Positions 5,892-61,380 of a stretch of DNA of 64,000 nt are shown piece after piece. Position 1 is the stretch's first letter. Each line of letters begins with the position of its first letter. Source of the stretch: Thalia democratica (taxonomy: Eukaryota). Under the pieces are notes generated by a model that worked only from the letters and a program-made list of their open reading frames with translations, made no database searches and was not told where the DNA came from. The stretch covers positions 46,252,001-46,316,000 of the forward strand of contig OZ241831.1 of the NCBI GenBank assembly GCA_965202585.1. Direction: 5' to 3'. The position numbers were made by a program, and so were the translations under genes.

Positions 5892-6298
5892 CCGATCATT
5901 TCTAACCCGCTATCATTTCTAACCCGTTCACTTCTAACCCGATCGTTTCTGACCCGATCACTTCTAACCCGACCATTTCTAACCCGATCACTTCTAACTC
6001 GATCACTTCTAACCTGATTACTTCTAACCCGATTACTTCTAACTCGATTATTTCTAACCCGATCACTTCAAACCGATCATTTCTAACCCGATCATTTCTA
6101 GCCTGATCACTTCTAACCCGATCACTTCTAACCCGATCGTTTCTAACCCGATCACTTATAACCCGATCACTTCTAACCCGATCACATCTAACCCAATCAT
6201 TTCTAACCCGATCACTTCTAACCCGATAATTCCAAAAAGAGCATTTCTAACCCGATCACATCTAACCTGATCACTTCTAACCCGATCGTTTCTAACCC
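5892..6298 (+). repeat. 15-bp minisatellite, consensus (C/T)TTCTAACCCGATCA, about 27 degenerate units
   Basis: Directly visible tandem array; the reverse complement of the unit (GGGTTAGAA(A/G)TGATC) forms the array at 28035-28432. Confidence 0.95.
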
Positions 6299-6816: not shown

Positions 6817-6820
6817 ATGT
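6817..6820. repeat. Left copy of 4-bp target-site duplication ATGT
   Basis: ...taaATGT|TATAACC at the left end and ...CTTGTTATA|ATGTtg at the right end (25107-25110). Confidence 0.85.
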
Positions 6821-7499
6821 TATAACCACTGACCGATGGCTCGGTCGTAGTTAGGTTAGGTAATTGCTTATTATTGCTTTTCGCCTTAGTTTGCGACCGC
6901 GTCATGCGTTTTATGTCGTCCATCGATAAGCGTTTGGACGACATGAAATCTTAGTTAAAATATATATATATAATATTAAAACGTTCTAATATATATTCTA
7001 ATATATATTCTAATATAATTATAAAACGTTCTAATGGAACGATCAATAACTTTAATGTATTGAGCTTATTTATAATCTAGTATCTAGAAAACAACTTTAA
7101 GTGAATGGTGAATTTATATACATTTAAAAACAAAACACGACAATGTGATAAAGTAACGTGATGAAGTTCTACCACAACTGACTCGAGGTTTTCTTAAGCT
7201 TAGTGACTGTACGCTGGTTACAATTTACAAAACTCAAGCAATTCTACTATCCTTTGCAGAGCTTCTATTCCCTTTGCCCAATCCGTCAACAACCCCACAA
7301 CAACCCAAAACATCCTTTTAACACACTAAGAAAAACTTATTTATTTTTTTACTCTCTTCTCTACTTACTACGTCACGCACAAGTCTTTCTGTAATTTTCC
7401 ACTTAAAACTTTGACTCCTTTGATGTAAATTCCACTTAACTTATCTTTGACTCCTTCATTGTACTTCTCGAAACAAGTAGTAAACTACTACTTGTTATA
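6821..7499 (-). repeat. 3' LTR (679 bp)
   Basis: Matches 24428-25106 at offset 17607; I found one mismatch (7119 T vs 24726 A). Termini are the 6-bp inverted repeat TATAAC/GTTATA. Confidence 0.95.
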
Positions 7500-7519
7500 C
7501 TACCCTTCCTACCTTACTT
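7500..7519 (-). promoter_or_regulatory. Polypurine tract (PPT), sense AAGTAAGGTAGGAAGGGTAG
   Basis: Purine-rich run directly abutting the start of the 3' LTR on the sense strand. Confidence 0.85.
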
Positions 7520-7583
7520 AATTGATTTGTTTTTATCTTCTGAGTGCTAAAATATTTGAAGTTATTTTCTCGTTCTAGCTTTT

Positions 7584-7625
7584 GAAACAAGTAGAAGCTA
7601 CTACTTGTTATACTACCCTTCCCTA
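7584..7625 (-). repeat. Second copy of the PPT plus the first ~30 bp of the LTR, 113 bp upstream of the true junction
   Basis: gaaacaagtagaagctactacttgttatactacccttcc (7584-7622) vs gaaacaagtagtaaactactacttgttatactacccttcc at the 3' LTR start. Confidence 0.85.
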
Positions 7626-8184
7626 ACTTCGTTTTTTTTTTTAATAATCTAAATGAGCACTTGTAGTTTGTATTTACTTTTGCTAGGCTAAAACCTCTAC
7701 CCAACTTAAGACACTGCACCCAAAAAAAACCTCACTACAGTCGTTAGTAGAACTAAGAAAAAGTTAAATTACGAAATTAATTTTTTACAGGAAACTGTAA
7801 AACTTTACCTTAAAACATGAATTGTTCGAGACTCAAAATATGAGAAAATAAACACGAAAAAATTATGCTAGTATTTAAATTTACTGGAAGTCTCTATCAC
7901 TTCTTAATCTAAGTTTGAACAATGTTAATTTGGTTAAGCATGACAAAATAAAAAGCATTTTCATTGAAATAAAAATAAAATTCTTTAATAAAACAATAGT
8001 TTTCAGATTAATAGTTATTTTTAAATACTAAGAAAAACATTTTTTTGTAGAAATACACTAATATAGTTTTTTAAAACGATTAAAAAAATTAATTATAAGA
8101 TGTTAGCAATTACACACAATTTTTAAAACAGAAAAAAAAAATTAATTAATACCTAAGCTACAATTTGTCTTGTAAGTTCACGTA

Positions 8185-8452
8185 CACAGCTTCTCGTTGA
8201 TAGGAACCTTCCGTTGCTGGAAAAGGAAATCTCTCGGACAAGGGGTTCGTTCTTCTGGGGAAAACTCGTAAAACACAGCTTCTCGTTGATAGGAACCTCC
8301 CGTTGCTGGAAAAGGAAATCTCTCGGACAAGGGGTTCGTTCTTCTGGGGAAAACTCGTAAAACACAGCTTCTCGTTGATAGGAACCTCCCGTTGCTGGAA
8401 AAGGAAATCTCTCGGACAAGGGGTTCGTTCTTCTGGGGAAAAACTCGTAAAA
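8185..8452. repeat. 89-bp tandem repeat, 3 near-identical copies, in the 3' untranslated part of the retroelement
   Basis: Units start at 8185, 8274 and 8363 (cacagcttctcgttgataggaacc...ctcgtaaaa). Confidence 0.95.
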
Positions 8453-8511
8453 CCTTGGTGGAAAAGTGCTAGGGACTTAAAACTTAGCTTGATTGAGAGG
8501 AAAACAGAGTG

Positions 8512-10590
8512 CTACATCGAACTCGGTTTGTCTTGTCCGAAAAACTCTGGTGTATTTAAATTTGTCTCATTTACACAAGGGAACCAATGCGACAAATGAT
8601 CTTCGTTTTTAAACGTTTCTTCTATTTCCGGAAAAGTTCTAGCTTCTTTAGAAACCGATTTCAAGGCCGTTCCCACCTGGAGGCAGTTCGAGATTCCGTG
8701 CGACTGTTCCATAACCTCGGCTGTCCCATCTCTTTCATCTCCATTTTTCCAAATCTTTGATAATAACCCTCCGTCATTTGCTACTTTCTCTTTTTCTTTT
8801 TTTATAGATGACTTCGAGATTCCGTGCGACTGTTCCATAATCTCGGCTGTCCCATCTCTTTCATCTCCACTTTTCCAAATCTTTGATAATAACCCTCCGT
8901 CATTTGCTACTTTCTCTTTTTCATTTTTTAAAGATGACTTTTGTTTTTTATTCAATTTTTTACTGTCTGTCTCAATCTCTTCCTTTCCTGTGTCTCTATA
9001 TTTCATCTTGATATTTGGTTTATCCTCGGACGCAGTTCTTTTCACGACATTGATATCAATATCTCCACATTGAATAGAAAACAGGTGGTGTGTATTTGTT
9101 TTTGCTTTGCAAAATCTCTCGAGTCCATCTTGAATGGTCAAGCAACTCATTTTTTCATCTTCTATATTTTTCAGTTTAAGCTCTTTAACTTGTTGTTTCC
9201 ATTTGACTATTTCTTTACTATGTTTTTCTTCATGCTCTTTGTTTGCCTGTTTGAGTTCCTTTAACTCTTTCAAGAGATTTGTTATTCTTAGTTTTTTAGT
9301 TCTTAGTTTTTCTTGGACGTTTTCCTTTTTTCTCTTTTGCTTATTTAATCTTTCTTGTAATATTTCAATGGTATTGTTGGCATTAAGTATTTTGTCACAA
9401 AGCTCAGTTCCTTCCTTTCTTAAATTTATTCCGTCCTGCGTTAAGTCATTTATAACTTCACTTTTTTTTCTAAGTTCGGCTTTTAACCTTTCTACTTCAG
9501 TTCCCAAAAATTCCATTGCCCCTTTCACGCTAGAATCATTAAATGATTGTACAGCTTTCTTTATGAGTACTTCTTGTAAAAGTTCCACTAACTCATTTTC
9601 TTGGAGAGTTTCTTCCCCTTCATGTGTAACATTTGAAAGATTTTTTTCATCCTCAATTACCATAACTTTTGTTGCATCCTTTTCTTTAATAACCTCTTTT
9701 TGTTTGACCATTTTCTTGACATTTTTTTGGTCGTAGGCAAGGTGAGACTCTTTAGAATTTTTAACAAAACTTCCCACATCTTCGAGGTTGTTAGATCTTT
9801 CCTTTGCAACTTCCATTTCACTTAAAGTGTGCTTTTTTAGCTTAGTTGATGATTCATTTTCCACTCCTTCAGATATCTCCGTCTCTTGCATTTGAACTTT
9901 GCTATTTTCTTTTCGTTTCTCCTCCGTCGTATGTAAAATTTTTACACCAGATTGAGTTCGTACCTTTTGTGGTTTTGTTTCTTGAATCGTACCATCTTCT
10001 TTTTGCTTTTTGTTAGTTGTCTGGGCTGCCTCTTCGCTAGTTGGCGTTCGTGCTCTTTTCGTTGGCATAGTAACCTGCTTCCCACTATTTCCTTTTTGTA
10101 TGTTATTTGTCGAGGAAAATGTCCTATCTCCTGATTGCGTTTCTACTTTTCTTGATCTCGTAGCGCTGATATTTATTTTCATATGACTCTCCTGAATATT
10201 TTTTGATGTTGTCCATGACCCTTCATTAGATTGCCATCGTCTCGATGGCATTGTATTCCTACTCACATTCCTAGTTGGTTCGTATCTTGATTTGTTGAGT
10301 CTCATAACTTCTTCTCTTCTTGGCTGGTTATTTCTTAATGAATAGTTTGATCGTCTATAATATGAGGACCTGGAAGGTGGCGTTCTTCTATTGTCCCAGC
10401 GATAATAACTATTTGTTCGACGTATAATTCTTCTGTTTTCCGTTCTACCGTCATATCTTCTATCTTCAGAATCATATTTGTCTCTTCTGTGATCACAATT
10501 TTTGTTTCCATCGATTTCTGTTAAACTATCAGTTTCGCTTGCCAACAAAGACACAGCGTCTTCGGATTTGTTCGTGCTGTTACAACTCAT
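8512..10590 (-). CDS. Retroelement ORF3, 692-aa protein of unknown function: Arg/Ser/Tyr-rich basic N-terminus, central coiled coil, duplicated 42-aa C-terminal unit
   Basis: 2.08-kb uninterrupted ORF in AT-rich DNA, ATG preceded by AAAA, same strand as gag-pol and env, inside the LTRs. No family recognised. Confidence 0.85.
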   Translation of the reverse strand: MSCNSTNKSEDAVSLLASETDSLTEIDGNKNCDHRRDKYDSEDRRYDGRTENRRIIRRTNSYYRWDNRRTPPSRSSYYRRSNYSLRNNQPRREEVMRLNKSRYEPTRNVSRNTMPSRRWQSNEGSWTTSKNIQESHMKINISATRSRKVETQSGDRTFSSTNNIQKGNSGKQVTMPTKRARTPTSEEAAQTTNKKQKEDGTIQETKPQKVRTQSGVKILHTTEEKRKENSKVQMQETEISEGVENESSTKLKKHTLSEMEVAKERSNNLEDVGSFVKNSKESHLAYDQKNVKKMVKQKEVIKEKDATKVMVIEDEKNLSNVTHEGEETLQENELVELLQEVLIKKAVQSFNDSSVKGAMEFLGTEVERLKAELRKKSEVINDLTQDGINLRKEGTELCDKILNANNTIEILQERLNKQKRKKENVQEKLRTKKLRITNLLKELKELKQANKEHEEKHSKEIVKWKQQVKELKLKNIEDEKMSCLTIQDGLERFCKAKTNTHHLFSIQCGDIDINVVKRTASEDKPNIKMKYRDTGKEEIETDSKKLNKKQKSSLKNEKEKVANDGGLLSKIWKSGDERDGTAEIMEQSHGISKSSIKKEKEKVANDGGLLSKIWKNGDERDGTAEVMEQSHGISNCLQVGTALKSVSKEARTFPEIEETFKNEDHLSHWFPCVNETNLNTPEFFGQDKPSSM

Positions 10591-11018
10591 TTTTAATTAA
10601 ACAAAAATGCTGTTAAGAAGAATAATTGTTATCCAAACGTTATTATATATATATTTTATTTATTTATTTATTTTTTTAATATTTTTATATTTTTTAACCA
10701 ACTCATGTTTTATTTTTTTATTTTTGGACAAATATTATTTTCAGTAAATTTTATAAGTTCATATTACTTACTTTACTCTATTGTTTCAATGCATTCTCAA
10801 TTTAAGTATACTGTGGCTCTGTTTTTTATTTTTTTTTTATTTTTTTTTTTTATTTTTTTTTTTATTTTTTTTTTTTTTTTGAAAGTGATGTGATGAAGAA
10901 ATAATGTGATTAATATTATAATAATTATCCCTGACCTTGTTGCTAATGAAGGAAAAAGGAAAAACAAAAAAAAATAATAAAACCAATATATACATGATCA
11001 GTAACGGCCACCTATTTC

Positions 11019-12734
11019 TCATTTTTTATCCCCCTCATTTGGTTTTTTTCCACATTTCTCCCTTAATGTTTGAATAATAACAACAACAATTAAGATTGTT
11101 GCTATAATTGTATAAATATGTCCTAAAAGTCCTAAGATATTCTTAATTTTCTTCCAAATCGAATATTTAATTTTTTCCAGCATGGCCCTCACATTGTTGT
11201 AGTCCATAGTATGCGTTTCTGCCAGTAATTCTTCTATGTTGATTCCATCACTTATATATTCTTCCTTGGTAATTAACAACAAGTTCTTGAGTTGCTGCTG
11301 TGTAACATCTTCTTCAGACCAAGAAACTTCTTGTAAGTCTTCATTTAGGTTTTCCTCTAAGATGTCGAAACTTTTTTCCTCTAGTTCAACATTTTTTATT
11401 GTAATCTTTTTCAGTGCTGGTATTTGATCGATTAAGGTATTGTTATTATATATTATCAAGCTGTTATTGAAACTAAATGTCTTTCGTTTAGTAGGTGTAA
11501 CTGTAGAGCTAATTTTTTCCGTAAGAAATCTTCCTTGGCGTAGTGATGTAAGCTTTGCTTCCGTGCCAGTATAGGCCACAAATAGTGGCCTATCTGACAC
11601 ATGACCATTATAATATAAATTAGGCTGCAAAACTGCTTGGACTTTTGAGCACCTCAGTTCTTTTAAAATCCCTCCTGCGAATATAGCCTGTACCTCTCTT
11701 TCGAGAAGATAAGACAAAACTTGAGATGGATTTAGACTTTGACTTCCCATAAGGGCTACTATATTTGCCCGTGCCATTTCACAGGTAACTAATTTAAAAT
11801 AGTTCCTAAAATTTTCGCTGTTCAAAAACGATCCATGTGCAATAGATGTAATTGTGGCTTGAATATTTCGTAGTGATGCTGGTATATTATCATCTGCAGT
11901 TCCAATTGGCTCAATGTTGCTTTCCTCAGGAATTTCCAGCACATGATTGGTCATTGTACAAAAAAATTTCGATTTTTTCTTTTGTTTTAGGCAGGCTAAT
12001 GATTTTGGTGAGCATTTCATCAGGTTAGATACAATTAAGTTTGTTTCGTCTAGTTCGAATAAGTTTCCTTTTGAAGTTTTATGAATTATTAGAGTTTTAT
12101 TTTCACTCCTCGGTATAGTTTCACAGGTTTTTTCTCTAGGTTCTACATAATTGATTCTCCAGTTTCCTGCTGTGCAAGTTTTGAATTTTCTACTGCAAAA
12201 CAATTTGCCCAACGATATGTGATGTAGTTCTTCTGTCACCACATTTTTTGTAATTGTTAGATAGTTTAATTCAACATTTTTTACTTCTATTAGGTTTCCA
12301 AACCATCCATATTCCGGTTCCAAAATGTTTTTCGTAGTCATGGATCCTTCCGCGTTTGGTAAGAGTCTCCCAACCGAAGTGAAGTGTCTTTGTTCCCACA
12401 ATTCACACTCCCTCTTTGTTACTAACTGGTGTTCCGTTCTTACTAAGTTGCAGACATTACTGCCGAAAAGGTAATGTATGCAGTTATAAGTATCTTTTGT
12501 CATTCTGCAAGCTTTTGCCCTTAAGTTATACATTTGGTTAAAAGGTTTAAAAACCCTTACTGGGTATATTTTAGTAGTGTTTCCTTTGTTTATGCATTTC
12601 CCAGGGGGTATAATTTTGAACTGTTGTATTACCTCATTCTTGCAAAGGTCTATATATACCTTCCTTGTTATATCTGAATAGACCATAGCTAAGCAAAGTG
12701 TTGTTATCCATAATGTTTTCATGACCAGCTTCAT
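11019..12734 (-). CDS. env: Env-like type I membrane glycoprotein, 571 aa, class III viral fusogen-like (chuvirus G / herpes gB / rhabdovirus G-like motifs)
   Basis: Hydrophobic signal peptide (MKLVMKTLWITTLCLAMVYS), Cys-rich ectodomain, N-glycosylation sequons (NTT, NKT, NNS, NNT), C-terminal TM (IYTIIATILIVVVII) and short basic tail. CRMTKDTYNCIHYLFG and NPSQVLSYLLEREVQAIFAGGILKELRC resemble class III fusogen motifs. Confidence 0.8.
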   Translation of the reverse strand: MKLVMKTLWITTLCLAMVYSDITRKVYIDLCKNEVIQQFKIIPPGKCINKGNTTKIYPVRVFKPFNQMYNLRAKACRMTKDTYNCIHYLFGSNVCNLVRTEHQLVTKRECELWEQRHFTSVGRLLPNAEGSMTTKNILEPEYGWFGNLIEVKNVELNYLTITKNVVTEELHHISLGKLFCSRKFKTCTAGNWRINYVEPREKTCETIPRSENKTLIIHKTSKGNLFELDETNLIVSNLMKCSPKSLACLKQKKKSKFFCTMTNHVLEIPEESNIEPIGTADDNIPASLRNIQATITSIAHGSFLNSENFRNYFKLVTCEMARANIVALMGSQSLNPSQVLSYLLEREVQAIFAGGILKELRCSKVQAVLQPNLYYNGHVSDRPLFVAYTGTEAKLTSLRQGRFLTEKISSTVTPTKRKTFSFNNSLIIYNNNTLIDQIPALKKITIKNVELEEKSFDILEENLNEDLQEVSWSEEDVTQQQLKNLLLITKEEYISDGINIEELLAETHTMDYNNVRAMLEKIKYSIWKKIKNILGLLGHIYTIIATILIVVVIIQTLREKCGKKPNEGDKK

Positions 12735-13126
12735 TATACTATCTACCTTCCAGCTTAAATTTTCTTATTTATAACCAAAACGAGAGAGGTGGGAGAAAAA
12801 AAAATAGTTCGCCAAAAAATTTTTTTTTTTAAATTTTTAATTTTTTATTTTTTTTTTTTTTTATTTTTTTTTTTTATTTTTATTTATTTTTTTTTTTTAT
12901 TTTTTTTTTTTGCCCAATCATCTTAGTATTGAGAGCGGAAAAATAACAACATCAAAAAATAAAATTAATAATAAGCAAGTAACTTTAACTTCCACATTAA
13001 TTATACTTCATATGATACACGGTAATTTTGTGTGACAATTTCAAGTGCTCGAGTTTAAAGTGACATGGTTATGGAATTTCTCAAAAAGAATCATATATCT
13101 GATATATACAAAATTAATACGATGGC

Positions 13127-13450
13127 TTAATTGGTCTCTCCCACCATTCCAAAATACGGTTGGTTATAAATGATGAAATACCTTAATTTCATCTCCAAAT
13201 TGAATAGTGAAATATCTTGAAAACTTATCATGTGAGTAATTCCTACAAAACCTATTGCGTACGAGCATTTCTCACTTACTTCGTTTTCAAAAAGGAAATT
13301 AAAATGGGTGCAGAAATTTTTTATCATATTACTGTTTGAACATTCATATAAATGAAAATTTTTATGTAAGAATTCTTTAAAGTTCTCATTCGAATTTATA
13401 TAATTATAGAAGTCTTCTCCATATACGGGGTTAATCATAAGTAAGAACAT
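13127..13450 (-). CDS. Possible small 107-aa retroelement cargo ORF, unknown function
   Basis: ATG-initiated ORF on the element sense strand, long for this AT-rich region, followed by an A-rich tract. No homology recognised. Confidence 0.35.
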   Translation of the reverse strand: MFLLMINPVYGEDFYNYINSNENFKEFLHKNFHLYECSNSNMIKNFCTHFNFLFENEVSEKCSYAIGFVGITHMISFQDISLFNLEMKLRYFIIYNQPYFGMVGETN

Positions 13451-14205
13451 TACAATTTTATCTAAAATAGTTATAATTTTTAGGGTGATTACTAATCAAT
13501 ATGCCTACAATAAATTTTACTTTGCTAAATTAGCTCAATTAAATTGAAGATGTAAAAATAAAATAAAAAAATAAAAAAAATTAGTGAGGGATGGAATAAC
13601 AATATGGCTAAAAAAAATACAAAACAAAACATTTTCTGAGGTAAAACTACTTAATTAATTCAGTAATTCATAAAAAACTATAAACTTGTGTTTCGTAATT
13701 ATAAATATAGACAATCATATTTAAACATTCATTTTTATTATTAATTATATCTGCTTATTTGCTATTTAAATCTAAAAAAAAATAACAGATATTATGATAT
13801 TGAAATTCAATATTATTTAAAGTTAAGTAATTAGAAAAATTACATAAAAAACAAAAAACTTATAACAAAACCTAAATATTGTTTTTTCAATTTTGTAATA
13901 AACTTGATGTCCGTTTTTCCATGACCCTTTCAACTTCGTCGTTTTTTTTCTGACAGATGTCTCGTGGAATTGTCAAGCAAAAAGGTATATTCTTGTCTTC
14001 ATCATGGACGTTTGAATTTAAAAGCAAAGTTTCTTTCGTAGAAACATCATCATAAAAAAATATTTCATTTGGAGTATCTTTTTCCAAATATTTTCGAGCA
14101 GTTTAGCTCGGAATGTTTTCATAGTTCAACTATCTTTATAAAATAATAAATATTTTTATTTCTATTTAAGAAGTTTAATTAATTTCTATTTAGGTGAGTT
14201 CCCTC

Positions 14206-14505
14206 TCAACTTATTCGTCCCCACATATCTTCCATATCAACTTATTCGTCTCCACACATATTCCATATTAACTTTTTCGTCTCCACACTTCTTCCATATC
14301 AACTTATTCGTCTCCACACATATTCCATATCAACTTATTCGTCTCCACACATATTCCATATCAACTTATTCGTCTCCACACTTCTTCCATATCAACTTAT
14401 TCGTCCCCACACATATTCCATATTAACTTATTCGTCTCCACACATATTCCATATCAACATATTCGTCCCCACACATATTCCATATCAACTTATTCGTCCC
14501 CACAC
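14206..14505. repeat. 31-bp minisatellite (TCAACTTATTCGTC(T/C)CCACACATATTCCATA), about 9.7 copies, inside the retroelement
   Basis: Directly visible tandem array between gag-pol and env. Confidence 0.95.
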
Positions 14506-17500
14506 AACGACTATCTTTCAGTTAATATTACTGGAGCTGATTACCCTTCCAAACTTAAAAAAAATTTTACCTCACATAAAATGATAAATATTTCTGAGTT
14601 CAGCCAACGAAGTTCGTTTAAAATATTGACAAATTGATAAGTTTCATTATGTAGTGTCACGGGAATAGAATTGCATCCTCCAGACTACTAACTTTTAGTT
14701 TTTTATTTGTTTAAAGTTTATTTATTAAATGTTTTTTTTTTTATGTTTAACATAATGTCATGATTTGACAACTTTAAAACACTTGATTTGTGGTTATTCT
14801 ACTGGCTTAAAATAAAAAACTATATTTATATTATTTTTATGATATACGATGCACTAAGATTAATATAATTAAGTGAATACTTAAATTCACTGTTAACATG
14901 CCATGCGAGGTTGTTTACGAGTTAAGTAGTTAAACTAGCAATTAAAAAAAAAAAAGACCAGAACTTTGCGCTTTTTTAAAAAAAAACAAAATTTCTTCAT
15001 CATAAATGAATAACATCAACAATATATATATACAAAAAAAAAAAAAAAAATAAGATAAATTAATATGAAAACTACAACAGGCAGACTATACATATAGTAA
15101 CTATAAATCATAATATATTTCTAAGCATGACATAATGAGAATAAACTTAATAAGTAATTTGTAGTTTAAGACAATGAAATTTCTACATCGATGCTCAAAC
15201 CCATAAAATGCCTTATGCATAATATCAACATAACTGTTACCTAAACAAATCACAACCGCTTGTGAAGCTATAATCAAAAGTTTATATACTTATTTTTTAT
15301 ACACTTTTTAAGCAAACATTAGTGGAATTTTTTTAGACATTAAGTAAGATTGTTAAAAAATAGATAAAGCTACCCAAACTTTATATTTTTTTTATAATTC
15401 ATTTTAATAAACTTAATTAATAAGTTATTAAAGCAAAATATTTATTATATTATTTAGATAATTTAATGAAAATAATTAAATGATAACAGTTTTTTAATCT
15501 AAATTCACAGAAATATGTTTGATAGTTATTGTATCATTATAGCAATCAATAGTTAAATATTAAATGTATTAATTAACTTTTTACTAAATTATCATTATAA
15601 CTTTATCAATAGATAAAAATCACTTTAAGTTATCAAAATAGCTTTAACCCTACAGAGAAAACTAATTATTAAACTAGAAGTTTGCCGTACAATGTGACGT
15701 AATATATCAACAAATTGAGTAAGTATTTCTTTTAAAATTATGTTACAAGAGACTAATAAGACAATTAGTTAATAAAATTAAGTGTTTTGGTAAGAAAAAC
15801 TTTATAGTACTTTTAGGTTCTGTTTTGTTATCGATTTAAAGTCAAACGCCATACTAAATAAATTAAAGCCAGATGTTATGAAAATTTAACAATTGTTATT
15901 TACTCCTAACGTTTTAGATTTTATCGATAAGAAAATAAAATCCGAGTGAAATTTAAATTGATAAGAAAGTTTAACTTTTACGACAGTAACTATAAAAAAT
16001 TATCAGATGCTTGTAAAACGAAAATAGCAAGTTTTATTTTGTTATTGTTTGAAAAATTTATTTTTAACAATTTTTTATGTGAAAATTTACAAGAACTGTC
16101 AATCATTACTCCTATTTGTTTATGATTAAAGTACATTTTTACTGCTGTAACTTATTCTTAAAAAAAATTCGATTTTTTATACGACGGGAATTTTATCACA
16201 AACAGGTGCGGTTAAATAATTTAAACTCCTTCCGTTGTGTTAACAATCTTTAAAACATTGTTAAAAAAGATTTAAAGTTAGGCTATAAGATTGTATTGTA
16301 ATAATTTAAAGTTTGAAAATAAATATTCTTAAAGTTATTAAGTATTGTGTAGTTATTATACACAAATTGTAATTAGAATATACTAAAACATTCTAAACTT
16401 CTTATATTCTTAATGAAAATCCACTAACAAAAATAATAGCGACATAATTATACACATGACATAGTTAAATAGTTAAATGTAAACAACAAAACTTTTTTAT
16501 TTTTTTTTATTAAATAATATTTGAAACTTTTTTATGTTTTTTTTATCTTTTAATTTTATATTTTTCTTATTTATTCTTTATTTTACCAACTAAACATATG
16601 AAAATAAAATAACTTAAAATTTAGTATATTGAGTAACAAAAAAACATTTAAATGTTTTGATTATTTTGAACAAAATGAATCTAATAAATATTAGTTTGCA
16701 CTTAAGCAAAATCGAAGTTACCTAACTATACATTATGTCAAAATTATATAAAAAATCATTTTATAAATATTATCACTGTTCTGTTTAATTATTATCATCT
16801 CTAATATCTCGTATCAATATTTTATAGTTACGGTGTTAAACATAACAACACATCAAAAAAAATTAAAAAAAAAATTTCTAGTTTTAAGAATTGAAGTCTA
16901 TAATGATAACAATAATTATTGAGTGAAGTCATAACTGTTAATATTATTCGTAAAGTAATTTGTTTTAAAACGCAGGATAACGTTTGATGTGTTTAAATGT
17001 GTTTCTAATAATGTTCCTCTATTTTTTCAAATGAAAGTATTCAATTTTAATTAACCCACATACTACAATAACATATAAGCTTAAACTTTGGATAATAAAT
17101 TATAATTTAAGCAACATATATTTGTTTAATAATATAAAATTTCAACATCTCTACTTATTGTTTATTTAATTATAATACCAAGTAGTAATAATAAAAAATA
17201 TATAAAAAAAAATTATCTAAATAATGAAAAAATAAAATAGTTACTAACAGTTTAATTGATTTCTTCCGAATGAGCTGAATTATGTAGAAACAAGATTTCT
17301 TCAAAACTGGTCTAAAAGTTATTCCTATTCGTCTGCATCGTGACCTTCCTTTCATATTCCCTCACGCGCAGAATCAATAAGTATCCTAGATGTTGTCCTG
17401 CTTCCTGTCGATCGCTTAAATTTTCCTAAATGTTTCATAATCGACTATTTAACACTATTTCCCGCTAAGTCTACTGTGGCTCTGCATAATTTTTAGTTTC

Positions 17501-19403
17501 CATGTTCTAACTTAGGTCCAACGATAAGAAAAAGTAATGTATTTGACCTCTCCCAATTTCTAGAATAGATTTTCTAAAAATAGTGTTAAGCTCTGCTGTC
17601 CATTTTCTATACTTCATAAAGCTTCATATGGCCAACAAACAAATACGTAAAAATGTTTATCCACCAAAATTTTGTTTTCCATGTTCTCCTTTTAGGCCCA
17701 ACGATAAGAAAGGATAAAAGTTAATATAAAAGTAAAAACTACTGCCTTATTGAAGTATGAAATTGACGTGTTGTAAAACAACGCGTACTTTATTAATTGA
17801 TTATTATTCGCAACTCAAGAATTTAAATTATGGTACTATAATTTATCATAGATTAAAACATTTTTAAAATCATTAACAATTAAGTTAACATAAGTAGTGA
17901 GATTTCCTTACAAATATGTAATAATATAAAAAAAATAATATAATAATATTTAACTCTTTACTATTATAATACATATTTAACAAAACACAAAAAAAATCTC
18001 AGTATGCTACATATAATTCTAATGTAACTAAAAAAAATTTTGAAGTCTGAGCTTTCCTTTCAGTTGATTTTTTTTATAAATGTTTCTTGAAAAGCAGATA
18101 TATATGATCACAACAAAAGAAAAAAATCTTAAATATCTTCTATCAAAATTGTAACTACTTGATAAAAGTTTAATTATCTTCAGTTTCTTGTTCAATTGAA
18201 TTCCCCTGACTCCTATACTTGAAATAATTCAATTTTGAATAAGTTGAAAAGTTTAACTTAATAAAAGCACTCAAGTTTTCTTAGCTTCTTAAATGATCCA
18301 AGTGCTGGCAAAATAAATTTATGCCACAACTTTTTAAATATTTAAATTTAAAAAGTTTTGTGTAAACATTTTCATTAATCTAACAATTTCTAATTTTAAG
18401 TATCGCGTTTTTTATTTTTTTTAATTTTATTATATTTTATTTATCTAAATAGTTACAAATATTAATCAATTATTCGCCGACAAGCTAAAAATTTATACTA
18501 AATAATATCAGCTGGGAATATTATTACAAAATAAAACAAAATAAAAACATTTATTTTTCAAAATCCTTCAAAAAATTTAAAAAATTTGTTTCACTAATTA
18601 TATTCCCATGTTAATTAAATGTCACAATTTCGAATACAAATCCTTTGTGTATAACATCGCATATTAAAAAAATTAAAATATTCGTTTGCACTTATTAACA
18701 AAATTTATTAAAAAACAAATTTTATTCAAAAGCTAATTTATTATTCTCATGCTTTACTAATTTCTATTGACAAAAAGTTTCATATTATATTACAAAGGTG
18801 TTAAATGAAAGCTATAGCATCTTATGCATTTATATAACATGTTAAATAAAATCTGAAACAATATTTATTTACTCATGCCCATCGATGCTTTATACTCGTA
18901 ACATCGATACAAGATTTATAAATACTGTTAATACATAATATAATACATTATTCTAAAATTGATAGTTTATAATATTAATTATTCAAAAAATTTTTTTATA
19001 AGTTTTATGATTTTTGGAAATTTTTATTAATTTTTATTATTTTTTTTATATTTTTTATTTTTATTTTATTTTATTTTATTTTTATTAAAAATTTTTTTAT
19101 TATTATTTATGGAAAAAATAAAAAAAAATTAATTACATGCAATAAGATGAAAAAGTAACACAACAAGTTGATTACAATCGCTTGTTTAGGCTTAAACAGG
19201 CCTTACTAAATTAACACAAAAAAAATCTTAATAAATAAGTATTTCGCACTCAATTGCTTATTGTAACGAATCACACAGCTATGCTTTAATATTAAAACTA
19301 TTTTTATATATCATGCTAACTAAAACAATATTGTACGAATAAAATATTTTGAACATGTCAATCTGATTAATGTTAGTTCCTACTCTCAATTCAAAACTTA
19401 CTT

Positions 19404-22400
19404 TTAATCGGATTCATCGTATGTGGTAGTGTCTATATCTGCGTAGTTTAGTTCAATATTTCTTTCCCTCAAATTGTATGCAGCCGTAGGTCCCAATTTG
19501 TTACCCTCCGCGTCGAGTTCCTCACGAGGGAAATACCCTTTTACGTTTCTTAATGAGACTTTTATCGGTTTACCATTTTTTTCTATGATCATGGAGTGAT
19601 CGGAATAAGAAAGTATTGGGTACGGGCCGTGATATTGTGCACTCAGATGTGATTTATTCTTTTTTCGAATCCACACTTTCTCACAGTCAAAAAGACCAGG
19701 CTCATAATAAGTATGCTTTTCTGTGTAGCATTTATGTTTTCTATATGCATTCGACATCGTATGAAGGAAGAAATTTGTTTCATAAGTGTCAATCTCCTTA
19801 TGGTTGTTGCTGACCTTGTTGAAAAATATCCTACCACTTATATTCGTGCACGTTCCTAATGCTAATTGCGACGGAGTAAACAGATTCCCTTCAATAAACG
19901 AGTTGTTAATGGATGTAGTTATCAGAGGTAAGAGCATAGACCATTTTTCTTTATCGACTAACGTTCTTAATGCAACATTAATACTTCTGTGTTGTCTTTC
20001 AACAAAACCATTACTTTCCGGACTATAAGGTGGTACGTATCGATGGTCTATACCTAATTGTTGGAATACTTCCTTGAGAAGGCTATTATTAAACTCACAT
20101 CCATTGTCTGTGACAATAACTTGTGGTACTCCAAAAATCCCGCACCACGATTGTATCAGCGCATTTTTTACTGTCTGAGCTTTCTTATTAGGTAAAGGTG
20201 TAGTAACCAAAAATCCGGTACCTCTGTCTTTGATAGTCATAATATATTTGTTATCATCTGAAATTACATTCATTGGACCAATAAGATCCACATGAATAAA
20301 TTGGAAACGTTCTGTATTCTTTGGATACAGACCTATTTTAGGTCTATTGTGTCTAAAAGTTTTAGTAGCTTGGCACTCGGCACAGCTCTTACACCAATAT
20401 TTTATGTCAGTCTTCAAAGTTGGCCACCAGTAATCCTTTGCAGTCGCTATTATAGATCTTTCTACTCCCAAATGTAGATATCCGTGAGCTAATTCAAATG
20501 CTGTCAAACGTAATATCGAGGGTAAGATTATACGTTGGTTATCTCCTTCTTGGATTACTGCTAAGTCCTCCGATCCCACATATTTTATTTCCTTTTTTAA
20601 TTCTTTGGCTTTCTTTAATAATAAAGGTTCGTTTTTTTGAAGTTGGGCTATTTCTAACTTATTTAATGATGCCGCTGTTATTAACTCTTCTTCATTTTCA
20701 GTCAGATCATCATCTGTGTCAGAACAGCTCAAATCTGTGTTTGAGTTATGAACATAGTCTGGATCGTTATCTTGTAGGGCTATGTGCATGGATGTGCTAT
20801 GAGGTGGTCTGCTTAATATATCGGCTACTATGTTATCGGCACCAGCTATATGTTTTATAAAAGGGTTAAACTCCTTGATTGCCGCGATGTAACGTTGTTC
20901 CATTGGTGACTGATCTTTAATTGGATTTGTGATTGCTTTTTCTACTGACTGACTGTCGGTCCTAATAATAAGTTCACGACCAATTATCCTACTTTGAAAA
21001 TGTTTCAAACTTAAATACAGAGCCCTTAGTTCTTTATAAAAAGTAGATCTATATCTCTTAAGGCTAGGAAGTTTTTTTGAAAAGAACGCAAGAGGCCTTT
21101 TATTTCCATCTATTCCTTCCTGCTCCAACACCGCCCCCACATGAGTTTCGGATGCGTCTGAGTATAATATTAATGGCATATTGTGATCTTCATAAGCTAA
21201 GGTTGCTGCCTTTGCCAACACCTTCAATGTATCCTTATATGCATTAATTTGGAATTGATTTAGTTTTAGTGGTTTTTTGTTAGTAGCTTTGGGTCCTCCA
21301 GACAATTCGTTAAGTGGTGCTATGATTTCAGATAATCTTGGAATGTGATGGTAATAATAATTGACTAAACCGATGAATCTTTTTAGTTCCTTTCTATTTG
21401 TTGGCCTCGGTAAATTAATAATTGCTTCCACTTTGCTATCCATGACACCTATACCATCGGCTCCAATTGAATGTCCTAAAAAGTCTACTTTTGATTCTGC
21501 TATTATACACTTCTTAGCGTTCAAATACAGTCCACTATCTTGTAATGTTTGAAGCACCTTTCTAAGATGCAATTCGTGATCTTTTTTAGTTTCACTAAAA
21601 ACAAGTATGTCATCCAGATAAACATAAACAAAACCTGTGCAAGGAGTCAAAATATCTTCCATCATCATCTGAAAACGCATCGGCGCATTCATGAGGCCAA
21701 ATGTTGTGCGATGAGGGATAAACACACCATGATGAGCAATTATAGCAGCATATTTTTGAGAGTTTGGGTGAATTGGAAGACTGTAGTACGCTTCTTTTAA
21801 GTCAAGACAGGAAAAAATTTTTGACCCATTTGGAATAAACTCAGGAAGCTCATCAATGCGAGGCAATGGGTATGAGATTGGGTTTGTGTGGGCATTTAAG
21901 GTTGTATAATCTATGCAGATTCTTATATTTCCATCCTTTTTTGGTACCATCGTAATTGGTGATACATATATTGCTTCTTGTCCTCTTGACATTGCCCCTC
22001 TTATTATTAAATCGTTAAAATTTTCCTCAACTATTTTACGTCTCATTCCGTTGCATTTACGTGCTTTAATCATTCTTGGTACTAGATTATTTACTTTTAT
22101 CTCAAGTGAATGTCCATGTTTAACTGGTTTATTGTAATCTGGTTCCATCGTAAGTTCTTTGAACTCCTCAAGTATGCTTTTTATATTGTTTTTGTCATCT
22201 GATTTCTCTTGGTAACTAGTTATTTTGAGTTTTTTACATGGTCCCTCAGCAGCTGTGGTTAATTCCCCAGCTGTATATAGTCTGGCTTTACGATTTAAAT
22301 TGTATTCAAGAATTTCGGAAGTGTGAGGTGAAATAATTAGTTTGTTAGCTTTGAGTATATCCAATCCAATAATTCCATAGTCCCCCGATTCCTTGGTAAC

Positions 22401-24551
22401 CCAAAATGTGGCTTTTTTTAAAAGCATATTTCCAATGCTGAGATCCACATCTACACTCCCTATTGGATAAATGGTTGAGTTTCCCAAACCCTTTATTGTT
22501 TTACTTTTTGGCTGGAAATATTGATTTATTCCATTAGTTAACATTTTCGGTAAGATAGACACTTCACTACCTGAATCGATTAATAACAAGACTCCCGATT
22601 TTTTTTCCAGTGCGAATAGGAGGTTTTTAGGAAGATTTTTTATATCGGTTGTTTCTGTTTTATTTTCTAAAACTGAGCATTGTTTAACCGGAACATTACT
22701 TTTGTCCAAAACCAATTCGTTTATCTTTTTCAAAATATTTTCTAGATTGTTGTTTATTTGATCTGTATTTCCCGAACATGTAGGCATTGTACTTTCATGA
22801 ATATCATTCTCTTTCGTTCCTTTCATGCTTACCGTTAATGAGCTCTTTTGATTTACAAAACTATTTTCTGTGTTATCCACTGGTATTGCTTTGTAACTGC
22901 AGTTTTTATTATCTTCGTCGTATAACTTAGTTTCCTTGTCCTTTGTTAAGTCTGTTTGCATAACAGCAACGTTGCAACTTTTCTGTTGTTGGTGATTCGC
23001 AATTAGATGATTCATCTTACAATCTTTCCTATTACAAGAGTAAGCCTCTTTTCCGTATCGCCAATGTTGATAGCATAAGTCACCCTGGTTTGTAAACGGA
23101 TTTGGTTTTGCACTAGTTTGTTGGTAGTTCCAATTATTGTTATTGTTTTTATTGTGTGAGTAAAAATCTGGAATTTGATGATTTCGATACGGTCTAAAAT
23201 TTCCGTTGTTGTTATTGTTGTAATTAAAATTATTGTTTTTATGTCCGATATTTCGATTGTTATACCTTCTAGGATTTGTACTATAAATTTGATTAGTTCG
23301 TGGCGTTCTATCATAATTTACCGGATTGGAAGGTATTTTTTCCTCTTGACAATTCCAAATACCTTGTGTCCTTCTCTTGAAGATATCATAGTTTTCATTA
23401 AAGTTTTCTCTGATTTTTGTTTTCAATGAAAGTGGACTTAAGTAGTAGCAGAAAAATTTTATGCGGTCAACTTTGCTGCTTTCTGCGAATTTAGTTGCAT
23501 CTGCGAGGAATACACCAAACGGGGTAGAAGCATCATATTGTGGTACCTTACTGAGAATATCGCTCAGAGAGTCGTCCCTATTAACACAAAAATCACAGAA
23601 TGATTCGAAGTTTCGATGTTCCCTGTCCACTAATCTATAAAAATTCGAAACATCCTCAGTTGGCCATTTTTCGATAAGTATGTTATACTTCACGTAATCA
23701 TCACGTATGTTAAGTCGATGAAATTCTTCCTGGAAATACCCCAATACATCTCTAGGATTTTTTACTTTCTCTATTCTGTTGAATTTTTTTATTAATCTGT
23801 CCATTTCCATATATTTTCCATATACTGTATGGTTTGAGTTAATATTATCAAAATTTCTATTATAAATATTTTGGTTCTGCATATAATCTTCGTCGCAAAA
23901 GTTGTTTTTATTTGCATACATGTTATTACTGATGTGATGCGTCATGTTATTATCTGTATGTATAAAGTTTTGACTTGTGATCAGATTTTCCAGTTTATTA
24001 TTATTTTCACAAATTTTCTCCCTTATTTTACGAATTTGTTCTTCCGCCTGTTGTCTTCTAAGGTTTTCTTCGCTTATCTTAAGTAATTTATTCATTTCTT
24101 CTATTTGTATTTCATAGTCTGTTTTCTTAATAATGTTTAAATTATCCTGGGTCGAAATGTTATTCTGTTGAAAAAAAATTTTTTGATCATTTTCTAACTT
24201 CGTCGAAGGTATTTTATCCATTTCTGTTTTTTTATTTGCCTGTATAATTCGATCATTAAATAAAGTTCTAGCTTCGTCATAAGTTGGTGTATTGACCTGA
24301 AAGGTTAATCCTTCTGTATCAGTTTTTTTACCTTCTTCGCCCTTATTTTCAACATTTCTATCATTCGGTCCGCTATTCGCTGTTTCATCGAAAGGTGGTA
24401 CATCTGTGCTTGTAGGGAGGACGCCATTATAACCACTGACCGATGGCTCGGTCGTAGTTAGGTTAGGTAATTGCTTATTATTGCTTTTCGCCTTAGTTTG
24501 CGACCGCGTCATGCGTTTTATGTCGTCCATCGATAAGCGTTTGGACGACAT
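19404..24551 (-). CDS. gag-pol: Gag-Pol polyprotein, 1715 aa, single frame, Ty3/Gypsy, CsRn1/Kabuki-like
   Basis: CHCC-type finger CYQHWRYGKEAYSCNRKDC (23019-23075); protease LIDSGS (~22570); RT SPITMVPKKDG...YLDD (21609-21620); RNase H YSDAS (~21155); integrase H-x3-H...C-x2-C, HVDLIGP, TDNG, VER and GPY (~19620). Confidence 0.97.
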   Translation of the reverse strand: MSSKRLSMDDIKRMTRSQTKAKSNNKQLPNLTTTEPSVSGYNGVLPTSTDVPPFDETANSGPNDRNVENKGEEGKKTDTEGLTFQVNTPTYDEARTLFNDRIIQANKKTEMDKIPSTKLENDQKIFFQQNNISTQDNLNIIKKTDYEIQIEEMNKLLKISEENLRRQQAEEQIRKIREKICENNNKLENLITSQNFIHTDNNMTHHISNNMYANKNNFCDEDYMQNQNIYNRNFDNINSNHTVYGKYMEMDRLIKKFNRIEKVKNPRDVLGYFQEEFHRLNIRDDYVKYNILIEKWPTEDVSNFYRLVDREHRNFESFCDFCVNRDDSLSDILSKVPQYDASTPFGVFLADATKFAESSKVDRIKFFCYYLSPLSLKTKIRENFNENYDIFKRRTQGIWNCQEEKIPSNPVNYDRTPRTNQIYSTNPRRYNNRNIGHKNNNFNYNNNNNGNFRPYRNHQIPDFYSHNKNNNNNWNYQQTSAKPNPFTNQGDLCYQHWRYGKEAYSCNRKDCKMNHLIANHQQQKSCNVAVMQTDLTKDKETKLYDEDNKNCSYKAIPVDNTENSFVNQKSSLTVSMKGTKENDIHESTMPTCSGNTDQINNNLENILKKINELVLDKSNVPVKQCSVLENKTETTDIKNLPKNLLFALEKKSGVLLLIDSGSEVSILPKMLTNGINQYFQPKSKTIKGLGNSTIYPIGSVDVDLSIGNMLLKKATFWVTKESGDYGIIGLDILKANKLIISPHTSEILEYNLNRKARLYTAGELTTAAEGPCKKLKITSYQEKSDDKNNIKSILEEFKELTMEPDYNKPVKHGHSLEIKVNNLVPRMIKARKCNGMRRKIVEENFNDLIIRGAMSRGQEAIYVSPITMVPKKDGNIRICIDYTTLNAHTNPISYPLPRIDELPEFIPNGSKIFSCLDLKEAYYSLPIHPNSQKYAAIIAHHGVFIPHRTTFGLMNAPMRFQMMMEDILTPCTGFVYVYLDDILVFSETKKDHELHLRKVLQTLQDSGLYLNAKKCIIAESKVDFLGHSIGADGIGVMDSKVEAIINLPRPTNRKELKRFIGLVNYYYHHIPRLSEIIAPLNELSGGPKATNKKPLKLNQFQINAYKDTLKVLAKAATLAYEDHNMPLILYSDASETHVGAVLEQEGIDGNKRPLAFFSKKLPSLKRYRSTFYKELRALYLSLKHFQSRIIGRELIIRTDSQSVEKAITNPIKDQSPMEQRYIAAIKEFNPFIKHIAGADNIVADILSRPPHSTSMHIALQDNDPDYVHNSNTDLSCSDTDDDLTENEEELITAASLNKLEIAQLQKNEPLLLKKAKELKKEIKYVGSEDLAVIQEGDNQRIILPSILRLTAFELAHGYLHLGVERSIIATAKDYWWPTLKTDIKYWCKSCAECQATKTFRHNRPKIGLYPKNTERFQFIHVDLIGPMNVISDDNKYIMTIKDRGTGFLVTTPLPNKKAQTVKNALIQSWCGIFGVPQVIVTDNGCEFNNSLLKEVFQQLGIDHRYVPPYSPESNGFVERQHRSINVALRTLVDKEKWSMLLPLITTSINNSFIEGNLFTPSQLALGTCTNISGRIFFNKVSNNHKEIDTYETNFFLHTMSNAYRKHKCYTEKHTYYEPGLFDCEKVWIRKKNKSHLSAQYHGPYPILSYSDHSMIIEKNGKPIKVSLRNVKGYFPREELDAEGNKLGPTAAYNLRERNIELNYADIDTTTYDESD
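24409..24426 (-). promoter_or_regulatory. Primer-binding site TGGCGTCCTCCC...
   Basis: TGG starts 1 nt after the 5' LTR end; complementary to a tRNA ending ...GGACG-CCA. Primer identity not established. Confidence 0.75.
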
Positions 24552-25106
24552 GAAATCTTAGTTAAAATATATATATATAATATTAAAACGTTCTAATATA
24601 TATTCTAATATATATTCTAATATAATTATAAAACGTTCTAATGGAACGATCAATAACTTTAATGTATTGAGCTTATTTATAATCTAGTATCTAGAAAACA
24701 ACTTTAAGTGAATGGTGAATTTATAAACATTTAAAAACAAAACACGACAATGTGATAAAGTAACGTGATGAAGTTCTACCACAACTGACTCGAGGTTTTC
24801 TTAAGCTTAGTGACTGTACGCTGGTTACAATTTACAAAACTCAAGCAATTCTACTATCCTTTGCAGAGCTTCTATTCCCTTTGCCCAATCCGTCAACAAC
24901 CCCACAACAACCCAAAACATCCTTTTAACACACTAAGAAAAACTTATTTATTTTTTTACTCTCTTCTCTACTTACTACGTCACGCACAAGTCTTTCTGTA
25001 ATTTTCCACTTAAAACTTTGACTCCTTTGATGTAAATTCCACTTAACTTATCTTTGACTCCTTCATTGTACTTCTCGAAACAAGTAGTAAACTACTACTT
25101 GTTATA
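24428..25106 (-). repeat. 5' LTR (679 bp), containing the first 41 codons of gag
   Basis: Near-identical to 6821-7499; followed on the sense strand by the PBS. Confidence 0.95.
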
Positions 25107-28034: not shown

Positions 28035-28432
28035 CGGGTTAGATCGGGTTAGAAACGATCAGGTTTGAAATGATTGGGTTAAAAATGATCGGGTTAAAAA
28101 TGATTGGGTTAGATATGATCGAGTTAGAAATTATCGGGTTAGAAATGATCGGGTCAAATCTGGTTGGAAATGATCAAATTAGAAATGATCTTGTTAGAAA
28201 TGATCTTGTTAGAAATGATCGGGTTAGAAATGATCGGGTTAGAAGTGATCGGGCTAGAAGTGATCGGGTTAGAAGTGATCGGGTTAGAAGTGATCGGGTT
28301 AGAAGTGATCGGGCTAGAAATGATCGGGTTAGATATGATCGGGTTAGAAGTGATTGGGTTGGAAGTGGTCGGGTTAGAAATGATCGGGTTAGAAGTGATC
28401 GGGTTAAAAATTATAACGAGTTAGAAATGATA
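28035..28432 (-). repeat. 15-bp minisatellite GGGTTAGAA(A/G)TGATC, about 26 units, inverted relative to the 5892-6298 array
   Basis: Directly visible; accounts for the spurious repetitive ORFs 28070-28510 and 28164-28424. Confidence 0.95.
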
Positions 28433-60721: not shown

Positions 60722-61380
60722 TTAAGGGCATCTTAAAAAACGTATGAGAAGATAGGTTTTATGTGAAATAGTCTTTTTTTACAATTTTAGTTTGCGCCTT
60801 CCATAAGGAACCTATTGTTGTCTCCAACTTTGACCGGCTATATCTCAAAAATTATGTTGAATTTTTAAAATCTGTAAAAAGCATCTTGTAGCTTAGTTAA
60901 AACTCTATAAAATAAGATCAATTTGTGGAAACAGTGTCAAAATGTAGTTACTAATAATAATAAAACATTTTAATAATAATATCCTTAATAACTATAAAAA
61001 GAAAACCAATGATAATCATATTGATACTAAAGGCGTAGGTATAAATCAATTTTTTCACAATTTCCTCTTAGTTTATAGAGTTTTAATCAAGCTACAAGTT
61101 GCTTTTTGCAGATTAAAGTTCAAAATAAATTTTGAGATATAGCAGGTAAAAGTCGGAGTCAACAATAGGTTCCTTATGGGGGGCACAAAGTAAAACGGCA
61201 AACAAAGTCTGAAAGTTTGAGCTAGTTATCTCTAAAAACGTAGGAGAAGATAGATTTTTAGTGAAATAGTCTATTTTTGCCGTTTTATTTTGTGCCTTCC
61301 ATAAGAAACCTATTGTAGTCTTCAACTTCGACCTGCTTTATCTCAAAAAAATTTTTTTATTTTAAAAATCTGTAAAATTA
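60722..61380. mobile_element. Rearranged fragments of the same TIR family as 62548-63223 (direct, inverted, direct)
   Basis: Shared blocks such as ccataaggaacctattgttg, ctatatctcaaaa and aaatctgtaaaaagcatcttgtagctt occur in both orientations; starts ttaa-gggcat. Confidence 0.75.

Follow-up and report, generated by a model that had tools for sequence, protein, structure and literature searches.

The window analyzed here, by which we mean the whole 64,000-nucleotide stretch of Thalia democratica contig OZ241831.1 (assembly GCA_965202585.1, forward-strand positions 46,252,001 to 46,316,000), contains a complete long terminal repeat (LTR) retroelement of ~18.29 kb (6821..25106) with two large genes, gag-pol (19404..24551) and, downstream of it, env (11019..12734). 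Coordinates are positions in the window throughout, and the element, its genes and its signals all read on the minus strand. We consider it highly probable that this open reading frame (ORF) is the env gene of a young and complete Ty3/Gypsy element and that it encodes a type I membrane glycoprotein related to herpesvirus glycoprotein B (gB), with the fold of a class III fusogen.

The boundaries of the element are given by direct repeats of 680 bp (6820-7499 and 24427-25106) that self-BLAST aligns at 99.85% identity with a single mismatch. Direct reading of their ends defines a 5' LTR of 679 bp (24428..25106), with the inverted termini TATAAC...GTTATA instead of TG...CA, and a 3' LTR (6821..7499) that differs from it by that one mismatch. 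Both outer flanks carry the target-site duplication ATGT (6817-6820 and 25107-25110), which becomes a 3-bp duplication, ATG, if the shared T is counted to the LTR. One base past the 5' LTR lies a putative primer-binding site that starts with TGG (24409..24426), and a polypurine tract (7500..7519) abuts the 3' LTR; a tRNA scan and an Rfam scan of the whole window gave no match. The element is thus a structurally complete Ty3/Gypsy insertion of recent date, and the one-base difference between its LTRs means that there has been little time for decay. We counted zero breaks in gag-pol and env together.

The gag-pol gene is a single unbroken ORF of 1715 amino acids (aa), in which Pfam recognizes RVT_1 (1.6e-31), RT_RNaseH_2, Integrase_H2C2 and rve in the order protease, reverse transcriptase (RT), RNase H and integrase that is typical of Ty3/Gypsy. 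The approximate positions of these domains are 22350-22589 for the protease, 21465-21947 for RT, 20868-21251 for RNase H, and 20358-20522 and 20019-20306 for the Zn-binding and core parts of the integrase, and the translation shows DSG, YLDD, HHCC and D,D,E motifs. Among solved structures, Gag-Pol of yeast Ty3 (7q5b, E=9.6e-73) is the best relative and aligns contiguously over ~700 residues. A BEL/Pao carrier was rejected, as no BEL/Pao Pfam families were found in gag-pol at E<=0.01 and Ty3 is the best solved relative; a preliminary description of the window, made from the sequence alone, had likewise assigned the carrier to Gypsy. The gag-pol frame is already open within the 5' LTR (24428-24551) and reads through the primer-binding site, and since its first ATG is inside the LTR the true start of gag is uncertain. 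No Pfam match was obtained for the further ORFs of the window and of the related elements, gag included.

The env ORF extends intact from 12734 down to 11019 with 571 codons open, a length that is not a product of chance in DNA of ~30% G+C, given that by our estimate ~7-8% of codons would be stops at the base composition of the window. The protein, which we refer to as Env, has a hydrophobic leader at about residues 8-19 (helix 2-19 in the structural model described below) and a single strong hydrophobic segment near its C-terminus, the predicted transmembrane segment (about residues 532-556; 11067..11141; within helix 512-562 of the model), followed by a tail of ~14 residues, and its topology is therefore that of a type I membrane protein. 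All 14 of its cysteines fall within residues 31-362, and there are four N-glycosylation sequons (N-x-S/T). Three motifs had been singled out in the preliminary description, together with the signal peptide, the Cys-rich ectodomain and the C-terminal transmembrane segment, and all of them are present where it had placed them: C76-x8-C85 followed by HYLFG (residues 87-91, about 12462-12509), EYGWFG (residues 141-146, 12297-12314) and NPSQVL...KELRC (residues 335-362, for which conversion to nucleotides gives exactly 11649-11732).

The assignment of Env draws on homology, Pfam, profile searches and structure prediction. An alignment and profile of 40 sequences of the Env family, termed A2, was used to build an AlphaFold2 (AF2) model of the monomer, which has a mean pLDDT of 84.6, with 490 of the 571 residues at 70 or above. 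From the N-terminus the model comprises a beta-rich half, a long central helix of 46 residues (286-331; 11742..11879; pLDDT >85) that is the equivalent of domain III and aligns to the central helix region of gB, and then, after another beta-rich region (350-435) and a flexible linker, helices next to the membrane and the transmembrane helix itself. When the model was compared with the PDB by Foldseek, the best 50 matches listed, from which all of our Foldseek figures for the PDB are taken, were without exception herpesvirus gB (E=3.9e-18 to 2e-15, probability 1.0), and the alignments, of 540-720 columns at ~10-14% identity, amount to a match over the full length of Env. The predicted fold is that of a class III fusogen. 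AlphaFold modeling followed by Foldseek had been proposed in the preliminary description as a check on its view that Env is a class III fusogen and not the F-type Env of errantiviruses, and, as run on the monomer, it bears that view out, both in the gB matches and in the presence of the long central helix; the profile evidence given below (E=5.7e-18 between A2 and gB) supports it as well. An F-type Env was rejected on these grounds and also because the window Env matched none of the F-type families in Pfam at E<=1 and no furin-type site (R-x-K/R-R) was found in its sequence.

Fold alone cannot tell which viral lineage is closest, since in BFVD the matches to gB and to chu-related, nyami-like and rhabdo-like glycoproteins score equally (E ~3e-18 to 1e-16), including those of a dermapteran chu-related virus (5.3e-18) and of Nyavirus (4.2e-18). 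These matches are among the points that speak for a different origin of env, namely a recent and independent capture of a chuvirus-like (Jingchuvirales/Mononegavirales) glycoprotein gene by a Gypsy element; an independent capture, possibly from a virus of this kind, had been suggested in the preliminary description. The stretch of Env that corresponds to the fusion domain also matches rhabdovirus-type G in both the PDB and Pfam, a protein of 571 aa with a short tail is closer to the G proteins of RNA viruses than to gB, and chuvirus-like, gB-like glycoproteins have been reported beside the pol of gypsy elements in arthropods, with copepods (Hexanauplia) among the several groups concerned (PMC13524379).

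In amino acid sequence, on the other hand, the Env family lies much nearer to gB, and the comparisons favor gB over the RNA-virus G proteins as its closer relative. The A2 profile matches more than 50 solved herpesvirus gB sequences in the PDB, with E-values from 5.7e-18, for human cytomegalovirus (HCMV), to ~1e-8, and the chains are from HCMV, Epstein-Barr virus (EBV), herpes simplex virus (HSV), varicella-zoster virus (VZV) and pseudorabies virus (PRV). The aligned part consists of the central helix and domain IV, and it takes in the NPSQVL...KELRC segment, so that the likeness to gB noted earlier for this segment is recovered by an alignment of the same stretch. Together with the beta-rich domain IV equivalent (350-435), this gB-like NPS..LS...C segment (335-362) occupies 11430..11732, and its residues P336, L340, A350 and C362 are kept in at least 36 of the 40 family members. 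It also lies in the stretch (residues 318-439) over which Env alone gives a sub-threshold Pfam match to PF00606, the gB ectodomain (E=0.0048). When Pfam was searched member by member, 24 of the 40 sequences matched PF00606, six matched Rhabdo_glycop_FD and a single one matched Monjiviricetes_fusion (PF24664; E=3.7e-4, 19 bits against a cut-off of 27 bits), a family to which the window Env gave no match. Only the distant member P0058 exceeds the PF00606 cut-off (44.9 versus 43 bits) and the window Env does not, which makes the Pfam link to gB a transitive one only.

The resemblance to RNA-virus G is confined to the fusion domain. There A2 matches four PDB chains named 'Glycoprotein', presumably lyssavirus G, over profile positions 68-203 with E-values of ~1e-5 to 6e-5, and it is the difference between these values and those for gB (1e-5 versus 6e-18), together with the count of 24 against one in Pfam, that tells against the capture of a chuvirus-like gene. 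A profile of seven sequences covering the N-terminal 280-320 residues of Env gave no match at E<=1, and what A2 retrieved from a set of 5.8 billion proteins was limited to close family members, with not one viral protein that carries a name.

Both aromatic patches of Env belong to the part of the protein for which the PDB profile search and Pfam gave matches to the rhabdovirus-type fusion domain. The first, HYLFG, is a putative fusion loop (residues 86-92, 12459..12479) flanked by the subfamily-specific cysteines C85 and C95, and DSSP places it (residues 88-92) in a turn between two long strands of the AF2 model, 68-87 and 93-103; 30-31 of 39 sequences have an aromatic residue at each of positions 88-90, and 32 of 39 keep G91. 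The second putative loop, EYGWFG, is even better conserved, with an aromatic residue at the position of Y142 in 39 of 40 sequences and at that of W144 in all 40 (tryptophan in 37), and its residues 142-146 directly precede the long strand 147-164. The two patches fit the pattern expected of the bipartite fusion loops of class III proteins and may lie close to each other in three dimensions. Of the earlier suggestion of bipartite loops, the patches themselves are borne out, being conserved across the family and correctly located, but not the C-x8-C spacing that had been offered with it: C76 is the family-wide cysteine, whereas C85 and C95 occur in 12 of 40 members, which make up the close subfamily, and the spacing is not the conserved feature.

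The relatives of Env allow its history to be considered. They comprise 11 proteins at 37-96% identity in a word-indexed search and 90 representatives, down to about 20% identity, in an exhaustive HMMER search, all on metagenome contigs from ENA, Logan or JGI, and the family as a whole reaches down to about 17-20% identity. Wherever the neighborhood of a relative is legible, its gene comes third in a Gypsy unit of the order gag-pol-env. This order is accompanied by RT, RNase H and integrase Pfam domains in contigs L001/L002, L006/L007, L008, L009/L010 and L011, and the readable relatives are all from marine metagenomes, mostly Tara Oceans. Several Tara samples contain contigs that are 98-99.4% identical in DNA to positions 10925-14284 of the window, that is, to env and 1.5 kb of the spacer that separates it from pol, and an extra ORF (ORF692, discussed below) is contained in 10822-8509, a segment to which one more contig is 98.7% identical. 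Neither the spacer part nor ORF692 is therefore private to the copy in the window, and ocean plankton must be home to the host itself or to something very closely related to it. The window itself holds one copy, and the cluster formed at 90% identity has 18 members. Over six elements the pairwise identities of pol correlate with those of env (exact Mantel test over 720 permutations, r=0.65, p=0.011), and a search of IMG/VR viral contigs and Joint Genome Institute (JGI) metagenome contigs with the close-family alignment found no relatives. The sequence data thus point to an Env family that has long been associated with Gypsy elements and stands closer to gB. A family that extends from 96% to ~17% identity with Gypsy as its only readable context, in which env divergence follows pol divergence and for which this search found no relative among the viral contigs of IMG/VR, is difficult to reconcile with a recent acquisition, and we regard the independent capture of a chuvirus-like gene as improbable.

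Whether env is used by the element is a separate matter, to which the DNA upstream of env is relevant. Between pol and env lies an AT-rich spacer of 6.67 kb (12735..19403; GC 0.21-0.29) with no ORF longer than 107 aa. The 107-aa ORF (13127-13450) has no Pfam match and is 98% identical in the independent Tara contig L012, as is the env-proximal 1.5 kb of the spacer as a whole, and a 31-bp tandem array is located at 14137-14568. Just upstream of env, 39 nt from its ATG, stands a TATAAATA box (12766..12773) that is a candidate internal promoter; ahead of it are two tracts, one C/T-rich and one A-rich (12820-12911). In the window, as in the diverged relatives L001, L004, L009 and L016, env is preceded at 28-40 nt by the motif TATAWA, which is absent from relatives in which env closely follows pol; a pyrimidine tract and AG acceptors are also present upstream of env and may mark a splice acceptor instead of a promoter region. 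Expression of env is probably from the TATA-type internal promoter just upstream of it or from a spliced LTR transcript. The A-rich tracts of the sense strand are found both upstream (12820-12911) and downstream (10822-10880) of env, and the upstream one is ~66 nt shorter in L012, a contig that is otherwise 98-99% identical, which shows that copies differ in the length of this tract. It is often at these tracts that metagenome contigs break off.

Compared with a copy that is 87% identical in DNA, env has a dN/dS of 0.17 (124 differences, over the part that is open in both), and on this measure it is under purifying selection. The env of that copy is shortened and so must contain at least one break; comparisons with near-identical copies rest on 9-11 differences only, and with L016 and L004 the synonymous sites are saturated. 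One could argue that env is an inert passenger, unused by the element, and that it owes its open frame solely to the very recent date of the insertion. The LTRs are, after all, one base apart, the 6.7-kb spacer parts env from pol, near-identical copies yield few differences, and the env of the relative L020 is shortened, with at least one break. An unused gene would, however, not be expected to show a dN/dS of 0.17 at 87% identity, nor to have kept full-length ORFs and invariant cysteines in some ten lineages at 37-96% identity, the aromatic residues of the loops in 40 sequences, and the arrangement of TATA box and pyrimidine tract upstream of env in diverged relatives. There is accordingly little chance, in our judgment, that env is a mere passenger. 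An intact ORF under purifying selection would also be the mark of a domesticated host fusogen, co-opted in the manner of a syncytin and merely near retroelement debris. The anatomy of the element contradicts this reading, as env is enclosed, together with gag-pol, by one pair of LTRs flanked by a target-site duplication, exists in many near-identical and diverged copies and has relatives that are always beside gag-pol; a domesticated host gene was rejected, and we assign it only a minimal probability.

The assignment of Env to the gB type as such has to be weighed against several observations that count against it. The window Env, at 16.8 bits, is below the curated PF00606 cut-off of 43 bits, and no relevant solved relative was found in the PDB with the Env sequence as the only query or with a profile of 12 Env sequences. 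All global TM-scores in the Foldseek comparison are below 0.5, at 0.33-0.39 for postfusion and 0.24 for prefusion gB; such values are expected of an elongated, hinged protein of several domains, although they mean that the predicted arrangement of the domains is not closely superposable. The AF2 model is of a monomer and so does not extend to the trimer, and the placement of the loops at the tip comes from secondary structure alone. Env is also short, at 571 aa compared with 630-950 residues for the solved gB chains, and ends in a tail of ~14 residues where gB, a protein of about 850-950 aa, has a large cytoplasmic domain. Finally, a spacer of 6.7 kb between pol and env is atypical and could impair the expression of env from the genomic transcript.

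If Env functions as other class III fusogens do, its leader would direct it to the endoplasmic reticulum, where the conserved cysteines would form disulfides and the sequons would be glycosylated, and it would then trimerize around the central helix (286-331). Upon a trigger, the aromatic loops HYLFG and YGWFG at the tip of the fusion domain would enter the target membrane, and a fold-back into a hairpin would draw the C-terminal transmembrane segment and the target membrane together. Particles formed by Gag-Pol might in this way pass from cell to cell, for example from the soma to the germline as in the case of Drosophila gypsy.

The part of the element downstream of env contains an extra ORF of 692 aa, ORF692 (8512..10590), which is inside the LTRs. 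Its product is rich in K, E and S and is predicted to be mostly disordered apart from one long helix (353-496; AF2 pLDDT 47), and it matches no Pfam family. The only homologues found are copies in Tara contigs that are 82-91% identical, with a dN/dS of ~0.45 over 118 differences, a value that suggests moderate constraint. A 126-bp in-frame duplication within ORF692 (8687-8940) is single in Tara contig L017, and three copies of an 89-bp tandem repeat (8184..8453) lie between ORF692 and the 3' LTR. Among the relatives, L004 (57% env identity) has at least 4.8 kb upstream of its env without pol. Two ORFs are found there, and also in L005, which encode an N/Q-rich protein of 525 aa (1669-3246) and one of 154 aa (3873-4337); neither has a Pfam match or any similarity to the window. 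These features raise the possibility of a 'complex' lineage of env-Gypsy elements in a marine planktonic animal, defined by a pol-env interval that has grown to several kilobases and is common to independent copies, a TATA-type promoter of its own for env and extra genes such as ORF692 within the LTRs, although we put this forward tentatively and think it rather less probable than not.

The remainder of the window showed no further resemblance to the proteins collected for comparison. Two tandem arrays of a 15-bp repeat (5892-6298 and 28042-28431), of ~26-27 copies each and mutually reverse-complementary (83-89%), lie on either side of the LTR element, one ~0.5 kb and the other 2.9 kb away from it, and they may be the arms of an older repeat of the foldback or terminal inverted repeat (TIR) type into which the element inserted. 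The only clearly recognizable fragment of a host gene is a PTBP1-like exon (46957-47196, minus strand; E=9e-22 to the second RNA recognition motif (RRM2) of human PTBP1), which encodes part of an RRM of a polypyrimidine-tract-binding protein and implies long AT-rich introns as well as a eukaryotic host with a PTB gene of animal type. An ORF of 264 aa (29507-30301, minus strand) in a G+C-richer patch (0.36) would encode a charged, coiled-coil-like protein with one hydrophobic segment and has no Pfam or PDB match, and the repeats clustered at 60730-63195, some direct and some inverted, each ~150-200 bp long and 80-87% identical, are probably a small host repeat family.

Of the viral proteins with which Env can be compared, herpesvirus gB (PF00606; PDB 7kdd, 5c6t, 6vlk and 2gum) shares with it a homologous central helix and domain IV, a fold that matches over the full length, internal bipartite loops and type I topology, and differs in that the element shows no sign of the accessory entry glycoproteins. 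Rhabdovirus G and the chuvirus-, nyami- and rhabdo-like glycoproteins resemble Env in their class III fold, comparable size, short tail and the sequence signal of the fusion domain, but this signal is far weaker than that to gB and is limited to that domain, and Env is carried by a retroelement whereas they are proteins of RNA viruses. Among LTR retroelements, nematode BEL/Pao elements (Tas) reportedly have a gB-like Env, said to have been described by Malik and colleagues in 2000. Mosquito BEL/Pao elements have chuvirus-like glycoproteins, according to the citation of Dezordi et al. (2020) in PMC13524379. These Envs are like the one in the window in being class III-type fusogens of LTR retroelements, and the difference is in the carrier, which here is Ty3/Gypsy. 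The Tor3b and Tor4b elements of Oikopleura dioica, for which an internal env promoter was demonstrated by 5' rapid amplification of cDNA ends (5'RACE; Henriet et al., 2015, PMC4402516), are likewise Gypsy elements with env in a marine planktonic animal, but the promoter proposed here is a candidate only, and the Tor Env fits furin cleavage whereas the window Env has no such site.

The closest counterparts are the Ty3/gypsy elements surveyed by Chary and Hayashi (bioRxiv 2023; eLife 2026, PMC13524379), whose collection from across Metazoa exceeds 1,500 elements with env. In about half of these the Env is of the HSV/gB type, and the hosts include cnidarians, ctenophores, tunicates, rotifers and arthropods. 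The background in the preliminary description, which put F-like Envs in insect errantiviruses and gB-like and chuvirus-like ones in BEL/Pao, is out of date in light of this survey, as is the premise that Gypsy elements carry the F-type alone. The gB-type Envs in it have five gB-like domains, hydrophobic fusion loops and lineage-specific cysteine bridges, sometimes beside the fusion loop; they co-diverge with pol, and their association with the elements is considered ancient (PMC13524379). The window env fits this class in every respect tested: gag-pol of Ty3/gypsy type with env downstream, a predicted gB-like hairpin fold of five domains, putative fusion loops in domain I, a putative lineage-specific cysteine bridge beside one of them, no obligatory furin site, env-pol co-divergence and an intact element with near-identical fragments in Tara samples. 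In the operational usage of Chary and Hayashi (PMC13524379) the element is an 'errantivirus', and since gB-type Env in Ty3/gypsy is already published, it represents a known kind well and is not a new capture, which leaves the picture of the origin of class III fusogens unchanged.

What sets the element apart from the survey set is the 6.7-kb gap between pol and env, its size of 18.3 kb and the 692-aa ORF that follows env. The survey limited the gap between pol and env to 1 kb, or to 3-5 kb where steps were done by hand, and the length of a region to 10 kb (PMC13524379), limits that served as a search filter and not as a biological definition, and with a gap of 6.67 kb and a length of 18.3 kb the present element would not have been collected. 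Its architecture suggests that surveys that require pol and env to be adjacent undercount such elements, and the architecture of a 'complex' lineage, if it exists, would be outside the published filters; the 18-kb size, the spacer, the candidate promoter and the extra ORF hint at such gene content in some lineages. The window thus provides a clean and apparently intact Gypsy element with a gB-type fusogen whose relatives are abundant in open-ocean plankton metagenomes, and it strengthens the case for a long common history of LTR retroelements and class III fusogens in animals, and for such elements being common in marine zooplankton.

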